Of a stretch of DNA of 64,000 nucleotides, positions 1,150-12,969 are shown piece by piece. Each line of letters begins with the position of its first letter. Position 1 is the first letter of the stretch. The notes beneath the pieces were generated by a model, which was not told the DNA's origin, searched no databases, and saw nothing but the letters and a program-made list of their open reading frames with translations. Source of the DNA: Eutreptiella sp. 'Long Island Sound 2002' (Eukaryota > Protista > Euglenida); assembly GCA_964036045.1 (NCBI GenBank), contig OZ038378.1, positions 81,406,001-81,470,000 on the forward strand, in the 5' to 3' direction. The position numbers and the translations under genes are program-made.

Positions 1150-4100
1150 CCAAAATGAAGGCGGGGTTGGCATATGCTCATGCACAGTCGAAGGTAGATG
1201 TGGACACCCTGTTGTTTGACTGGTGGCTCTCATGAAGCACGTTCATGTTTGTGGAAGGAGCGCCGCTAGACATAAATCATGTGAAGTGCCCGTGCATAAT
1301 GCCACGGCTGCCATAAGGCATGCGATCCAGTGTCTCAATGCACATGCCAGATGCTAGAGGATTGAACGTCCCCAGATATCATGCGTAAGGCCCCTGGCAA
1401 GGCCAACGGCTGCTGCTAAGCTTGGACGAACCCGCGCTTTCGACATTGAGCCTTACGTTTGACAGTGCGCATTGCCTGGATCTAGAAAAATGGCACTCTG
1501 CGCGAGGGGCTGTGGTGCAGTCGGCAATGCATGTGCTTGTGGTGGTAGAGATATGTTGGGAAAAACAGTTGTCCCGGCATGTCCCAGGCTATACAATGCA
1601 TCGCATCCAAGCACAGACATGCCGCGTAAGGAAGTGCAATTTGGGCGCGTGCCGATTTGTTTTTGGACCGGTAAGTGTGGTCACAGACACCTGTCACCAC
1701 TTCAAGGTAAAATCGGTTTGCAACGCTCAAGCGAGCAGCATCATAGGGGTGCACGTGCCCAAGCGCTGCCAACCTAAAAATTACAAAGAAGCGCTATCAA
1801 ATGTTGGTAGACTATGAGAAACAGCCCCACGCACTGAACGTATCGTTGGGGGACTGGCATGTCCCAACACGCAGCCCAACCAGATAATACCGTGCCGAAG
1901 TGCACGCGGCCCCCCTCCCAAGCTGAATGGAGCTCAAACTTAAGAAAATGTGGGCGACCATGAAGGCCAAACAAATCCACCACGTCACAGTGAAGTATGG
2001 GCCAGGATTGGTAGATCACCCGCAAGGCCAGGTCTGGGCAGCACTAACAAAACAACATGGACATTGCCTCCCAGAATTTTTAAGTACGTGTGTGCCGGCA
2101 CACTGTTGATGCGTTCTCCGTCCATTATGACGTGCCCCCCCCCCCCCCTTGTAATTGCACGGCCATTGCTGTTTGCAATACGGACCATACCATATCTGTC
2201 ACTATTCACTTTGGAATTGAGCCTCTTGACCCTGCTTAGAAACCTCTTTGCGTCCCTCTGCATGTTAATAATGGAGTGTGACAGTACAATAGTGTCATCA
2301 ACAGCCGAAATTATTTGTAAAACGACTTTGGACATTGGGAGTAGGCACTCGGTGCCTTGCATTACACGATGCACTGCCGTGAACACCAAGACCTTGTAGA
2401 GAACGTACCACAACGGGTCCACCCCCCCCTCTTGTTCCAAACCGTTTCTGTTGGGGTATAGGGGGGGGGGGAGAGCCTTGTCAAGCTGTAGAGACTGGGC
2501 ATTAGCCTCCTTAAGTAGTGGGTCACACTAGGTTTGCGCCACCAGAGCGCGTTGGTCCACTTGGCCAAAGGGGTAGAGTGGTCTTTTTCGACCACGATTG
2601 TCCGTGCTGCCTTGTCCACTTTTGGGGATGAGAAGGTTGTGAATAAACCGCCTCCCAAACGCTGGGAAAGACCTTTGACTATGGCAAATTGACACAGCAA
2701 ATAGAAATGCGGGGTGTTCATATGTTGGGGGCGACGGAACCATGCTCTCGGGTGCATTTTATGGCACCCTGACTCCATTGAAATTGGCCTGGTGCTATTA
2801 TTCAAATTATGTCCTAGCTTTTTTATAATGAGGAGGTGCGGCACTTTATGCACTTCAGCGCGGAGGTCCGCAATTGCGGCAACCAACGTAGAACCCATGA
2901 GTGCAAGCGCATATATGCCAAATACTATAGCGAGGAGGGGCGCAAACCCATACTGGCGGTCCAAGATGTGTTGTTTGTTGCCGTCTTTACAAACTCCTCC
3001 CTGCGAAACGGTTACAGGACCCCCTACCCGAAAGCCCCATGGGATGCGGCGACAACTTGGCTGTGCGTTGCACGCCAAACCACACTAAGGTGCGCATCAC
3101 TGTCAAACACCTCCAGATCCACGTGCCTGTGCACCTAGTGAGGGGGGGATGGGGATGGCGCTAGGGGGTGCCTCAGGGACGCCTCGCAAGACACTACGTC
3201 ATGCAGCGGGGGGCCTGAGACTACAATGGCAGTTCTAGAGTCATCGACATGTGACAGCCATAACATACTCGCCACCCCAAAGGAAGACATATTGCAACTA
3301 CGGAGTATGGGGGATAAACTCAAACTCAACCCATGGTTGCATCCACCAGCTGTTCTAATGGTACGTGCAATCGTAGAGAGCAGTCTCATGACTAGGTGGG
3401 TGCACCACAAGCTGATTGATTGGCCAACAGAGTGCGCCACCAACACCAGTAGCATGGGGGTGGTCACCCAAGCCGTTACAGCCACAGCCAATGTGGTCCG
3501 GCGTGCATTGTCTCTACCACTCCAAAATCCATGGACAGTCATATGCGGCCCCACTAAACAGGCATGTTAGCAGTTTTCCTCTGCGGACGCCCGCCTGTGG
3601 CGCGCGGCGGTGCATTACCTCATCAAGTGTGCGCGGTCCAACCACAAGTGGACCAGGAAAACCACATTGAGCGCCCTTGAAACGGAACGGGAATGTACAG
3701 ATTAGCACCTAGCAGAGTGTAAGAGCACAAATTATCCCAGCTTCTCTGCTTGGTGTATCCAAATGGGCTGAAGTCTGGAGCCCCTGTGCCTTCTAAGCAA
3801 TAGTTGGCGGTTGGAGCTGGGCCGAATAGAGACCAAATATGGCTACCTGCTAGTGGTGGCAGACATGAATGTCAATGCAGACGAAACAATGTGGGGGCTT
3901 GGGTGCGTGGTGGCCACGTGCGAAGGCACTGTGCTGGCCACCATGGGTGCCAGGTGCCGAGCAGTGCATGCCTCGAAAACCCTCTTTGAAGCCACAACTG
4001 TGCTGCAAGGCGGCGTGCAAGCGGTCTGCGACGCGCTCCACAAATGGGTTGTGTGTGGTAGAAAGTGCGGCGGCGGTGTAATAACCAGCTAGCAGCCTTG

Positions 4101-7999: not shown

Positions 8000-8872
8000 T
8001 GCGGGGTGATTCGTGCGCTTCCCTGCATCTTTCTTGGAGGGCCCGAGGAAGACACGGGCCACTTGCGCATATGGTGCGAACGGGATGAGGCAGTTGCCCG
8101 GCGAAGGTCGAGGTCGAGGAGGTCATAGCGGACACGCCACTAGCAGACAGGGCCATGGAGTTCATGTCCTGGAAGGAGCACAGATGCAAGTGGACGGAGT
8201 CCTGAATGGTGGGAGTTGTCCCGAGTGAACCCACGGAGTTGTTAGCCGAGGTGCGGGCTGCCTCATCCTGAGATCCGGCGAAGGCCAAGATGTCCGTAGA
8301 GGACATAGTCCAGATAGGAGAAAATGGCTAGGCCCGGAGAAATCATCGACTCACCGAGATCATGCAGCTGCCTCCGGAAGACCGCAGTAAACCTACGTAC
8401 GCGTTCCTCCGCGGTGATATGCCATTGTGCGAGCTAGTTGGCAAGGTCAGACAGCTGCCACCGTGGGACCCTATTGATGGCCTCCTAGGCGGTCTTTACG
8501 CGGCCTTTAGGCCAACGCCAAGGTCATATACATTAGGCATAATGAGGCCATGTCAACATTTCCCGAGCGGACGGCGGCGGCAGCACAGGCCTTTAGCAAA
8601 TGGATCGAGTCTTGGGTGGCACAAGACTTCGCCACGTTCCGCGCGCGGTCTTGTGAAGTGTCTTCGCAGTCGCGTGCCACCATTGGCGGTACCATGGTGC
8701 GCAACCAATACTGTCATGACGAACCATGGCTCAAGGTGTTTGTAGGCCATCCTGCAGTAGGTAGCATCATGGGCTGGCCCAGTGATGTGCTGCTTGTCTT
8801 CCAACAACCGTTGTTCTCCTTGCCGGTTTTGGCGGTGGCCATTGTGTTGGGCATGGAGGAACTGTGGCTGTA
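8000..8872 (-). mobile_element. LINE ORF1/APE fragment interrupted by the DNA transposon (continues at 12677-~12950)
   Basis: A GLAIF motif near 8330 resembles the APE GRGLAIF of family 2. Removing 8873-12676 plus one TA joins RDNPPRLPVI (ORF 12659-12865) in frame to QPQFLHAQ...RLLEDKQHITG (ORF 8553-8807). Confidence 0.65.
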
Positions 8873-9276
8873 CCCTTGGCGCCTGTATGAAAGGTAGTTT
8901 TGTTCATCATGAATCGTTTTATGAAATATGAACGGATTTTGCTCTTGCTGGGGTACCCATGGGCCATGTTCGTTCAAAATTGGGGGGGTTGGGTTACCAC
9001 CCTTGGGGTGAGCTTTTTTTTGTCTGCCGGGGGTTTTTTGGGAAAATTGCCATTTTTAACAGTGTTTGAAAATTATGAAAATCCTCCTCCCCTGTTCATA
9101 ATTTGGTTCATAATTCAGTTCATAATTCAGTCTCGTTTTATGAACCCGCAGAGCGTTTTATGAACGCGTTTTATGAACGCATTTATGAACAGCACCACAG
9201 GCACACAAAAATCGCTCAGGCTTCAATCTTTCTTGTCCTTGCTTGTGCTTCCTTGTCATTGCAGGTTCATGCCGCC

Positions 9277-11100
9277 CTACACCTCAGGGCTGGGGGTTGT
9301 TGGGTCTTCCCAAAGGGGGGCCGTGGCCTGGGTTTCACCTCCATCCGGGGCCTGGGCATGGGTTTGGGCTGGTAATTTGGCTGCGGGTTTGGCCGAGGGG
9401 TGCGTTGGGGCATCTGCCTCCATGAGGGCGGCCTTAGGGGCAGCTTTGGGCTCGGGCTGAGGGGCCTGCTTAGCCTCAGGCTTGGGTTCACGTTTGGCTG
9501 GCTTTGGGGCCGGCTCAGGCGGCGGGTCAGCGTCCGGTGTGGGGTTAGACTTCTTTTTGGTCTTGGCCTTGGCCTTGGCGGCCCTGTCGGCCTTCTGCTG
9601 CTCCCAATGGGTCACTGCTGCAGCATGAGAGGCATACAACAGATGCCTCTCAACCCGAAAAATCTCCTTTTCCCCTAGGTACTCCTGACCACACCTTACC
9701 CCCCCCCCCCTGACACAACTGAAGTTACAACCCCCGGGTAGACACCATCGGGGTACGGCACAAACACCTGCTCACCACGCAGGGGGTCAGGTGACTCATC
9801 CCCCTCCAAGGAGGGCGGCTCCTCGCGCCGCTTTTGCTGCGCCTGCTTCCCCTTCCCCTTCCCATGGGGACGGTGAAGTGCCTGGTCCGACGACGAGCTG
9901 CTGCCCGATGCGAAGGACTTGCGCGCCGGTGGGCGCTTCTTGCTTTGCGGGGGTTTGGGGGGGGGCCGCGGCAGGGGGTTTGGGTTTCTCGGCGGGGGCG
10001 GGCTTTGCTGGGGAGGCGCTGCGGGAGCTGGCCGGGCTGGGGGGGTTCATCCCACAGCTAGACATCACGATGTCCTCGTCCGAACACCCCTCCCACCCCA
10101 ACTCCCCCAGGGCCGCCCAGCAGGGGTTGTTGGCCGCCCACCTCGTCAGGCGGCGGGAGCGCTCCCACTCCCGCAGCCCGGACAGGATGGCAGACCCCCG
10201 CTGAGGGTTGAGCAGCAGCAGCTGGTACAGGGCGGACAGGGCGATGCTGAACTCCGCGGTGCCCAACTTGTACCAGATGAGGACCCCCGCAACGTCCGCC
10301 GGGTTCACTTCCACGTCAACGACCTGTGACCGTGCCGTTCATAAATGCGTTCATAAAACGCGTTCATGAATCGCGTTCATGGTTCATAAACGGGTAGTGC
10401 GGGAATTATGAATTATGAACGCGGAATCATGAACGAATTGTGAACGAATTATGAACGCAAATACCTCGAAATCCGGCTCTGGTCCAATGGTCCCCATGAC
10501 GCCCAGGGCGGTCCGCACGTTCGCCGCTGCACTGGGAGGGGCGCCCGGGGCGGCGCCGGTGGGGCCTGTGGTGCTATTGGTGGCCGGGGCTGCCCGGGCA
10601 AGGGGCTTGGCGGGTCGGGTGATGGTGAGGCCCTCCACGGCCCACTCGTACGAGGCCTCCTACCCCGGGTCATACACCCCCCCCAAAATGGATTCCCACT
10701 GGGGGATGCACTCCAACTTGCGCCCGGTGCACTGCAGCTTCACCAACCCCCGTTCCTCCGAACGGAGGAACAATAGCTCCCAATGGGAGCTCCGCATCAA
10801 GCGCCCCCCCGCCGCCGAAAAAAATTTGGCCTACGTCAAATCCCCCGCCCCAATTGGTTCCGGGACGGGGGACAGGGGCTTTCCCGCCACGGGCTTCCAC
10901 GACAATCCCCCCCCCCCCCCCCCGGACCGCCAGGCCCCCCCCTCCCCCTTGTTGCGGATGCGGGGCCGCAACATGCGCCGGAATGCCCAGCGCAGTGTGA
11001 CGTAAGTCACATCAAGGCTCAAAAAAAGGGGGGCATCGGGGGGGTACCCGCTGTCCAGCGCCCCTTACGCCCAGGGGAGGGTCAGCACCGGGCGCTGGTT
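9277..11100 (-). pseudogene. Second transposon ORF (TnpA-like position) with a GT-AG intron at 10324-10464 and a C-terminal Tudor-like domain
   Basis: The frame runs through ORFs 10831-11022, 10384-10638 and 9796-10314 with TAG stops. The spliced junction GPEPDFE|VVDVEVNPADV is in frame. Later frameshifts occur at G-runs, and there is a K/P/A-rich tail. Confidence 0.55.
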
Positions 11101-11479
11101 GGCCTGGGTGAGGCCCCAGGCATGGCCTGCCTCCCCCCGCAACCAGGGGGTCGCAACCAAACCCCCCCCCCCCCCTTGCCCCCTCCCCCTCTACTGCCAC
11201 GCCCTCGACCTCGGCCTTCACCTCCTCGATGTCCTCCGCGGCCTCCTCCTCCTTCACCCCCCCCCCGCTGCCTCCTTCTTCTTCTTCTTCTCCTCCCTCT
11301 TCTTCTCCTCCTACTTCTTCTCCTTCTTCCTCCTCTTCCTCTCCTGCGCCGAGGAGTCTGTCGACTCCTCACTTGAGGAGTTGGCGGTGGGTCGGGAGGC
11401 GGAGGCGGGGTGAGCGCTGTGGGGTTGGGGGTGGGCTTAAGGAGGCGAAGGAGCTTGAGGTGGACGTGGAGGTGGAGGT

Positions 11480-12561
11480 TGTCCTCCGAGCAGCGATGCC
11501 ATTCCACTGCTTGGCCGTGTCGTCACACACGGCCTCGTTGAAAATGCTCCCCACTTGGGGAGCCACGCTGATGCCCAGCAGCCGCCGGAGCCACGGCTGG
11601 TCCCCACCAAGGAGGACCTCTGCCGGCACCCAGCTGTCGCACGAGTAAAATTTTTTGCAGTTAATGATAGGTTGCAGGACCTGTGTTCATAAAAGGTGTT
11701 CATAAAACCTGTTTATAAAACGCGTTCATAATTCATAAATGGGCAGCACGGCGTTTTATGACGGCAATTCTCGAATTATGAACGCGCGAATCGTGAACAA
11801 CTTATGAACACGAAGATGCAGACTACAAACCTGTAGCACCTGAGCCCAAATTTGGCCCAAGGCAACCATATCCTTGTCCCCCGTGACGGCCAGGCCGATG
11901 ACCGATAGGAAGGCGGGTGTACGCGCCTTTAGCCCATGGTTCAATAGCCCCACCGATAGCTGCGGCCAACTGCCACCGGCGCAAGGATACCCGTCACCCT
12001 GCACCACAAAGGTGAGGGGGCGGGTCCAGTCAATAGACTAGCAAAGTGCCGGCCGGGATTGCACGTATTGTGCCCGCTACCGCAGGGGACAGCAGCGACC
12101 CGACGATGGGGGGTAGGGACGTTCCACCGGGAGGGACAACGCAAGCAGAGCGGTCAATGAGTTGCACGTTGCGTCAAATTGGTCCCGTGTGGGGATGGGC
12201 CGTGGGAGGGGCAGTCCCGTGCGGGCGGTGTAGGCGTCGCCCCGGCGGGTGATGTACTCAGACAACACTCGGAAGCCGCAGCGGGGTGCACCCAACTCCA
12301 AAAGGAGCCCTATCAGATACGGTGCGGGAAAGAGGGCCTCCGCATACGTACGGATGGCTTGCACCTTGGTTTTGTGGACCGCCGGGAGGGGAGCGCGGTG
12401 CATTGCCTCCGTAAAACGGGCCCGGATGAGGGGGGACGATGACATCCATTGGGCCAACAGGTCGGAACACTTGCTGTCCCGAAAACTGGTGGCACCACTG
12501 ACCCGAACAAGCATCATGTTCAGCTCCGTCAAGATGGAGGGAGGGTAAGACATAACAAAAT
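11480..12561 (-). pseudogene. DDE transposase N-terminal and catalytic part, with a GT-AG intron at 11681-11830
   Basis: One frame with two TAG stops: ...FVVQGDGYPCAGGSWPQLSVGLLNHG...IGLAVTGDKD...WAQVLQ|VLQPIIN...EVLLGGDQPWLRRLLGIS. The DGxP...SWP...N and D-P...L.G patterns recall CACTA/CMC (and Transib/RAG1-type) first and second catalytic Asp regions. No third acidic residue region was found, so it looks internally deleted. Confidence 0.65.
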
Positions 12562-12969
12562 CTGTGCACAAAGAAGCGTTCATAAAAGGTGTTCATAATT
12601 CATGGTTCATACATGAACCGTTCATATATGAAATATGAATTATGAAGAATACTACTTTTCATACAGGTACCAAGGATATGACCGGAAGCCGCGGAGGATT
12701 GTCCCGGTAGCAGAGGGGCGAAGGTGCATGGCACTCCCGGTGTGGTCCAAGCACCTTGCTAGGATCCAGGGAGACGACGCACCTGATCGCGTTACGGCGG
12801 GGCTGCTGTAGCTGTGTAGTTGCCGGATGGGGATGACGATGCGTCAACAGACGCCCGTCACACATTGGATACCTTAGACCTAGAGCCGGTGGTAGGGCCC
12901 AGTCAGGCGGGTAGGGATTGGTGATCGCATCGGCTTGGTGCCCCGTTCAGGCAGGAGTAGACTTCATCA

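Follow-up and report, generated by a model that had tools for sequence, protein, structure and literature searches.

CACTA/En-Spm transposons carry subterminal repeats to which the element protein TnpA binds, and have TnpA-type and TnpD-type products; in En/Spm the repeats sit at the ends and not in every intron. In phage Mu and other elements, internal transposase-binding sites help synaptic assembly or serve as operators. Transib and RAG1-like transposons (ProtoRAG, RAGL) move by cut-and-paste and have terminal inverted repeats (TIRs); Transib makes a GC-rich target-site duplication (TSD) of 5 bp, and its TIR has a CAC heptamer-like start. Introners and the models proposed for euglenid introns also involve transposon-type inverted repeats and stable hairpins (PMC3935182, PMC11282704). 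The present analysis concerns a stretch of 64,000 nucleotides from the euglenid Eutreptiella sp. 'Long Island Sound 2002' (contig OZ038378.1, positions 81,406,001 to 81,470,000 of assembly GCA_964036045.1; hereafter the 64-kb window). It contains, at 8873..12676 and with its gene on the minus strand, a DNA transposon whose full-length relatives carry arrays of the subterminal word in all of their introns.

The window family resembles each of these systems in part. It shares cut-and-paste movement and TIRs with Transib and RAG1-like elements, and a RAG1-type catalytic core fold, with an RNase H domain that has a helical insertion and with a C-terminal domain, was matched through a natural relative, P0133. 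However, its TSD measures 2 bp, its ends begin with CCCTTGG (CCCGGG in the related L040 family), and it has long subterminal and intronic arrays in a multi-exon unit; its second open reading frame (ORF2) is unrelated to the RAG2 of RAG-type systems, and its host is a euglenid. The many short subterminal repeats in both orientations, to which an element protein presumably binds, and the probable second product of the unit recall CACTA/En-Spm, from which the family differs in end sequence, TSD length, and transposase family. With the internal enhancer of phage Mu (internal activation sequence, IAS), where transposase-bound sites aid the synaptic complex or double as operators, the analogy would be functional: enzymes and hosts are unrelated, and here the sites are many, lie in predicted spliceosomal introns, and repeat the subterminal word. 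In contrast to introners, the introns of the window family have GT-AG borders, lack element termini and TSDs, occupy conserved positions, and lie inside a transposon gene instead of host genes.

Motif arrays in the ends and introns of the transposon family

The hexamer GTTCAT occurred 56 times in the 64-kb window, compared to 28.8 ± 5.8 times in dinucleotide-preserving shuffles (maximum 43), and 29 of these sites fell within 8873-12676. When the longer word GTTCATAA was searched with at most one mismatch, the 3804-bp element had 33 sites, against 20 in the remaining 60196 bp of the window, where the motif map revealed no arrays. Five main clusters were observed (plus-strand coordinates 8902-8933, 9073-9190, 10337-10456, 11685-11809, and 12578-12647), and in every internal cluster consecutive forward words gave way to consecutive reverse words. 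The motif map thereby confirmed the original prediction that clusters of GTTCAT(AA) and (TT)ATGAAC occupy both termini and two GT-AG introns. In the full-length copy L031, most neighboring words of the same orientation (16 of 22) had a spacing of 11-15 bp. In the full element, GTTCATAA arrays fill all non-coding segments, namely both subterminal/untranslated (UTR) regions, the 3'-UTR unit, and the three introns. In the window family, the four clusters tested all showed slightly higher conservation of the motif cores than of the spacers, which is weak evidence.

Copies were collected by a DNA search of the organism's own genome (2.28 Gb, 2317 contigs), which returned many sequences 88-95% identical to the window copy. 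Nearly all of them aligned as two blocks, corresponding to positions 1-2609 and 2606-3803 of the window copy and separated by about 1.1 kb (approximately 1095 bp, for example from 2697 to 3793 in L031), which identifies the window copy as an internally deleted derivative. Full-length copies, such as L031:1500-6378 and L032, measure about 4.88 kb and contain the third array intron, so that the search for intact copies proposed with the original prediction yielded relatives with arrays in all three introns. The catalytic exon gave more than 6000 first-look candidates in the genome; those scored were 59-91% identical in protein sequence, and several had open frames of about 380 codons. The window copy is decayed and its family very abundant, and the lineage may include autonomous copies.

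An alignment of the ends showed that the similarity among more than 30 copies stops at C-CCTTGG ... CCAAGG-G, the ends reading CCCTTGG[TAC/CGC]CTGTATGAAA. The 24-nt end sequence had 445 occurrences in the genome with up to two mismatches. Among the six copies for which both flanks were available, five showed a perfect 2-bp direct repeat (AG, AT, TT, CA, and, in the window, TA), for which our own arithmetic gives a chance expectation of about 6e-6. The transposon moves by cut-and-paste and makes a 2-bp TSD. A DNA transposon with a short TSD had been predicted originally, and the predicted ends, 8873-12676, proved exact, with the TIRs located there between TA/TA flanks.

Three introns, all with GT-AG borders, were recognized in L031 (2347-2493, 3583-3735, and 4833-4972), giving a predicted four-exon transcription unit in which exons 1 and 2 encode a DDE-type transposase. 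The window copy retains introns 1 and 3, and intron 2 falls within its deleted part. P0133, which has an uninterrupted 434-residue frame on Logan contigs of about 1.9 kb from another species, aligned without a gap, its residues up to 101 matching exon 1 and those from 102 onward matching exon 2. Since the two exons abut exactly at this point, the GT-AG borders of intron 1 are taken to be real. Nonconventional euglenid introns are characterized by CAG at positions +4 to +6 and CTG 5-6 nt before the 3' end (PMC12501133); this signature was absent at the borders that restore colinearity. Alternative nonconventional borders for intron 1 were rejected, because six codons would be lost compared to the relatives. 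L039 and L040, with protein identities of 37-40%, carry an intron at the position of intron 1, and introns 2 and 3 were found by eye at corresponding places in the L040 family.

To compare the words between lineages, six related families were considered, of which A, B, C, and F come from this genome or another assembly of it. Family A (the window copy and L031) uses the word GTTCATAA. Family B (L040), with the word GTTCAAAA and the ends CCCGGGCAACCTGTCTGAAAC, has a 100% match in the genome at C2:111356057 and at least 285 first-look candidates, and family C (L046, word GGTTCAACC) derives from the assembly record that also contains this 100% matching L040. Family D (L043), from another species, uses GTTCTAC and is without intron 1; family E (L039) is represented by a partial metagenome contig, with TGTCAAAA in its introns and ATTGAAC in its 5' region; and family F (L050), from this genome, has an uninterrupted 493-codon frame and the word TGCGCGCGCTA. 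In families A-D, the top 6-mer of the end region reached 18-65 occurrences per kb in the family's own introns (in D, in a cluster located directly after ORF1) and 0-0.5 per kb in its own exons, and it was seen at most once in the introns of any other family (Fisher p from 7e-22 to 6e-6). Family F, examined by eye, showed the same layout in four introns and the UTRs, with a GC-rich word that is mostly in one orientation. In five of the six families, the end/UTR regions and the introns or post-ORF1 cluster share a motif of the family's own, which is nearly absent from the exons. The layout is thus a conserved trait of the lineage, and the word co-evolves between ends and introns. The original proposal that putative binding arrays are hidden in introns is strengthened by this covariation as regards the arrays, and their binding by a protein is what we infer.

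Two groups of copies are described here in their own right. L047, L048, and L049 (C12:55105800-, C9:66557000-, and C7:29610600-) represent a chimeric L040 subfamily of at least 12 copies, whose match to L040 is confined to the part between the 5' end and the final base of intron 1; the junction is at the intron 1 acceptor, and beyond it the copies share unrelated sequence at 97%. The L050 family (G000:C2:38313800-38321800) gave 8520 first-look candidates and about 97 scored places, many of the copies being without stops, and may have been active recently.

Predicted fold of the transposase and the second reading frame

The exons were searched one by one. Pfam searches at E-values up to 10 gave no meaningful match, Transposase_21 and Transposase_24 included, for the exon ORFs of the window, the better copies, or the relatives. 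The RAG1 models of Pfam found no match in the exons or the relatives, and a PDB sequence search with a single protein and with a profile also returned no match. A HMMER search collected 774 relatives at E-values up to 1e-3, and the 150 listed were all unnamed short products, which made the alignment deeper but gave no family name; a word-based sequence search also returned unnamed products only. The relatives' contigs that were looked up came either from Logan run assemblies or from two assemblies in ENA, of which one represents this genome. With exon 2, the feature search of the ESM atlas gave a weak lead to RAG1 fragments.

The conserved motifs of the transposase are GDGYPCAGG, GGDQPW, CILHC, SPDGEE, and VVESxNxILK, followed by RGGG. 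Judged from the sequence, the conserved GDG, GGD, and ESxN motifs are in the order expected for a catalytic D, D, and E (D600, D708, and E962 in RAG1), and the succession D...D...C-x-x-H...E-S-x-N-x-x-x-K is arranged in what we take to be the manner of the RAG1/Transib group. An AlphaFold model of the catalytic exon alone, built from a shallow alignment, was unusable, with a predicted local distance difference test (pLDDT) value of 44. For P0133, which is about 35% identical to exon 2 of the window element, AlphaFold (AF2) with a 74-row alignment produced a model with a pLDDT of 79 and a predicted template modeling score (pTM) of 0.82. Foldseek comparison of this model with the PDB returned RAG1, BbRAGL (amphioxus), or HzTransib (Helicoverpa) for all of the top 48 matches, the best with an E-value of 1.6e-9 and a template modeling score (TM) of 0.56, and Hermes followed far behind at 0.03. 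An independent structural search with VIA-align gave a Z-score of 15.9 for RAG1 over 371 residues (root-mean-square deviation 4.4), 15.3 for BbRAGL, 11.7 for the P element transposase, 11.0 for Transib, and 6.9 for Hermes. The model therefore places the enzyme in the RAG1/Transib-like structural class, as its nearest solved fold. What keeps the family outside Transib as currently defined is its 2-bp duplication, together with ends of the CCC type and the absence of similarity at the sequence level.

The original prediction had pointed to CACTA/EnSpm, and an element of this kind (CMC), with TnpA-type and TnpD-type products, would account for the subterminal arrays, the short TSD, the intron-rich unit, and the probable two products. 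To our knowledge, no CMC transposase structure has been solved, so that a CMC enzyme might also find RAG1 as its nearest fold. However, the ends start with neither CACTA nor CACTG but with CCCTTGG, the TSD is of 2 bp and not 3, Pfam remained blank for the CACTA-related families as for all others, and RAG1, RAG-like proteins, and Transib rank first in the fold searches. The affinity with CACTA/EnSpm is therefore regarded as very unlikely.

The ATG-GAC with which ORF2 starts lies 63 nt upstream of the donor of intron 2, and in L031 the frame is intact across this intron and then extends over exons 3 and 4. The L040 and L046 families have a comparable Met-Asp start, and parts of ORF2 are weakly conserved between families (E-values of 2.9e-5 and 1e-3, the former for the exon 4 part against the L040 family). 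ORF2 is thus probably a second protein; it had no match in Pfam or the ESM atlas. A C-terminal block, VFVPYPDGV ... WVEYPGEKEMF, was noted at 9277-9760 (minus strand) of the window and at L031:5527-5700. This block is weakly conserved in the L040 family, has no Pfam match, and looks like a Tudor- or chromo-type barrel.

Possible roles of the intron arrays

We cautiously favor, as slightly better than an even bet, the reading that the arrays are putative family-specific protein-binding sites placed in introns. The GTTCATAA words would be recognized by an element-encoded protein, either the transposase, through its non-catalytic part, or the product of ORF2, and the sites would be spread along the whole element, internally only where the coding sequence stays undisturbed. 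Such internal sites could help to bring the two ends together in a transposition complex or enable the protein to control the gene that encodes it, and they might also give co-resident families a private means of recognition. This reading is supported by the identity of the arrays with the subterminal repeats, their covariation, their roughly helical spacing, and the presence of both orientations in the window family.

Several points weigh against it. In family E, the word of the 5' region differs from that of the introns, which makes L039 the exception to the covariation, and the covariation of the other families could arise from sequence homogenization without any function. No DNA-binding domain was recognized in the Pfam searches or, for ORF2, in the ESM atlas. 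The fold evidence comes from a relative with about 35% identity over the catalytic exon and not from the element's own spliced protein. Finally, all arrays lie inside the presumed primary transcript, which leaves room for a role at the RNA level.

The arrays could indeed act in the pre-mRNA, by helping or gating splicing in the manner of euglenid 'intermediate' introns, by being diced into small RNAs directed against the ends of all copies, or as RNA words bound by an element protein that would thereby control splicing. Every array is located in a UTR or intron of one transcription unit, and the forward/reverse layout makes each window-family intron a long predicted RNA hairpin. The clusters of the window family fold far better than shuffled sequences (z from -3.5 to -7.1), with -50.3 kcal/mol and z = -7.1 for intron 3 (10328-10465), z = -4.3 for intron 1, and z = -4.4 for the L031 homologue of the 3'-UTR array unit. 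Euglenid introns whose ends are joined by secondary structure are known (PMC3935182, PMC12501133), and the window-family introns, whose predicted stable secondary structure would join the intron ends as in nonconventional euglenid introns, fit with their GT-AG borders the 'conventional/intermediate' class of PMC3935182. However, the hairpin potential of intron 1 is weak in L040 (z = -0.8) and L039 (z = -1.7), and the L050 family has mostly same-orientation repeats, which indicates that the repeated word, and not RNA pairing, is conserved. Both orientations of the motif in the window family would also suit recognition of double-stranded DNA, and the borders are plain GT-AG, the nonconventional signature being absent. 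An RNA-level role is therefore regarded as possible but unlikely.

Explanations that dispense with a role for the arrays fared less well. Under one of them, the arrays would have spread from the subterminal regions and been homogenized, be it through slippage, through gene conversion, or through a switch of template in gap repair. Tandem-like short repeats favor slippage and microhomology, the deletion junction of the window copy has an overlap of 4 nt, copy L035 has a deletion edge within the intron 3 array, and the excess of core over spacer conservation is small. Neutral homogenization would nevertheless not be expected to persist in all lineages or to fill all introns; six families have retained the layout despite their differences in word, in composition, and in orientation, the intron positions are common to families with as little as 37-40% protein identity, and the exons are almost free of the word. 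We consider this explanation improbable. Even less credit, amounting to a very slim chance, is given to the birth of the introns from miniature inverted-repeat transposable elements, known as MITEs, or introner-like miniature derivatives that inserted into the transposase gene and seeded host introns too. Each intron does resemble a tiny element body with its forward and reverse arrays, and MITEs have been proposed as the source of the nonconventional introns of euglenids (PMC3935182). However, the introns have neither the CCCTTGG...CCAAGGG termini nor the 2-bp duplication pattern, and their positions are common to families with different words (as far as they could be compared, the window and L040 families share the positions of all three introns, and the L039 family shares that of intron 1). 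A search of the genome for the pattern of two forward words and one reverse word gave 1393 matches, the first 100 of which were all sequences of the element's own clusters, spaced as within element copies. Solo array units were absent among these 100 matches and elsewhere in the 64-kb window. The missing termini, shared positions, and lack of solo units thus give no support to the intron birth from miniature derivatives envisaged in the original prediction. The same holds for its suggestion that internal synapsis between arrays yields MITEs, since the deletion breakpoints, that of the window copy included, lie mostly outside arrays and do not point to array-to-array synapsis as the source of the deletions.

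Binding sites in introns could also form part of a wider picture, in which the intron and subterminal arrays would constitute a family-specific 'address label' read by an element protein and the array units would in addition be raw material of hairpin-type euglenid introns; we regard this as a doubtful proposition with little probability. If true, the label would be needed for assembly of the transposition complex or for private recognition of each co-resident family, and a RAG1-like transposon lineage would be tied to the origin of the unusual euglenid introns.

The window copy and its meaning for euglenid genomes

The element at 8873..12676, an internally deleted, non-autonomous copy of the transposon of about 4.88 kb, is flanked by the two TA copies of the TSD (left 8871..8872, right 12677..12678). 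The TIR at the gene 3' end (8873..8910) begins with CCCTTGGCGCCTGTATGAAAGG read inward, a terminal sequence kept in more than 30 copies whose flanks outside are unrelated. In the TIR at the gene 5' end (12639..12676), the final base is A, in place of the G of other copies. The inverted repeat pairs 8871-8910 with 12639-12678 over 40 nt with 83% complementarity. Within the 3' part of the unit, a small terminal cluster (8902..8933) with one forward and two reverse motifs is followed by the palindromic array unit of the 3' UTR (9092..9192, CTGTTCAT ... ATGAACAG), with three forward and then four reverse motifs; the opposite end contains the 5' subterminal array (12578..12650), as located by the motif map and the inverted repeat.

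All exons and introns lie on the minus strand. Exon 1 (11831..12553) would encode the start of the transposase, with the start codon at 12553-12551 and the first Asp motif, GDGYPCAGG, and carries stops and frame breaks in this copy. Intron 1 (11681..11830) has 150 nt, GT-AG borders, and five forward and two reverse motifs. A remnant of exon 2 (11482..11680) represents the start of the catalytic exon, with the second catalytic-type Asp motif, GGDQPW. At the deletion junction (11478..11481, 4 nt overlap), about 1.1 kb is missing compared to full-length copies; lost are intron 2 and the start of ORF2, together with most of exon 2, where the C-x-x-H and E motifs are located, and a short part of exon 3. 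The downstream edge corresponds to L031 position 3793, about 58 nt inside exon 3. Exon 3 (10465..11478), shortened at its 5' end by these 58 nt, contains the low-complexity, proline- and acid/base-rich region of ORF2, with several homopolymer runs and frame breaks. Intron 3 in full-length numbering (10324..10464, 141 nt, GT-AG) consists almost entirely of motifs, four forward and five reverse, and was found in 23 aligned copies. Exon 4 (9277..10323) would encode the C-terminal part of ORF2, with a proline/lysine-rich stretch and the conserved C-terminal block, and has open frames at 9277-9639 and 9796-10314. Long C (or G) homopolymer runs break the coding frames of the window copy at 9693-9710, 10903-10935, 11162-11175, and 11255-11266; comparable runs are present in other copies and may be due either to real slippage or to errors in the assembly of long reads.

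The 25-nt Euglena spliced-leader sequence, a 24-nt stretch of which is printed in two Euglena papers, had 5161 matches in the genome and none for the reversed control, which marks the genome as euglenid. More than 5000 exact copies are dispersed along chromosome-size contigs and are not confined to tandem arrays. A spliced-leader-like fragment was also observed at L039:2797-2823, inside the metagenome contig that carries the element relative, and hints at a euglenid host.

In the literature searched, we found no description of Transib in Euglena in this sense, or of end-motif arrays stored in every intron with covarying words. The paper that proposed the MITE hypothesis noted that transposons were still to be identified in euglenids at that time (PMC3935182), and in the E. 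gracilis genome repeats make up over half of the sequence, with 32.7% unclassified repeats (PMC11252322). The family described here provides a defined and abundant euglenid transposon lineage, relevant to this large unclassified share. A RAG1/Transib-like fold, as suggested by the model, combined with a 2-bp duplication and different ends, would extend the range known for such folds, a matter of interest for how V(D)J recombination originated. The introns offer material for the link between transposons and hairpin introns in euglenids, although the evidence here argues against simple intron birth by insertion. The covarying words of ends and introns lead to predictions about self-recognition between families that share one genome.

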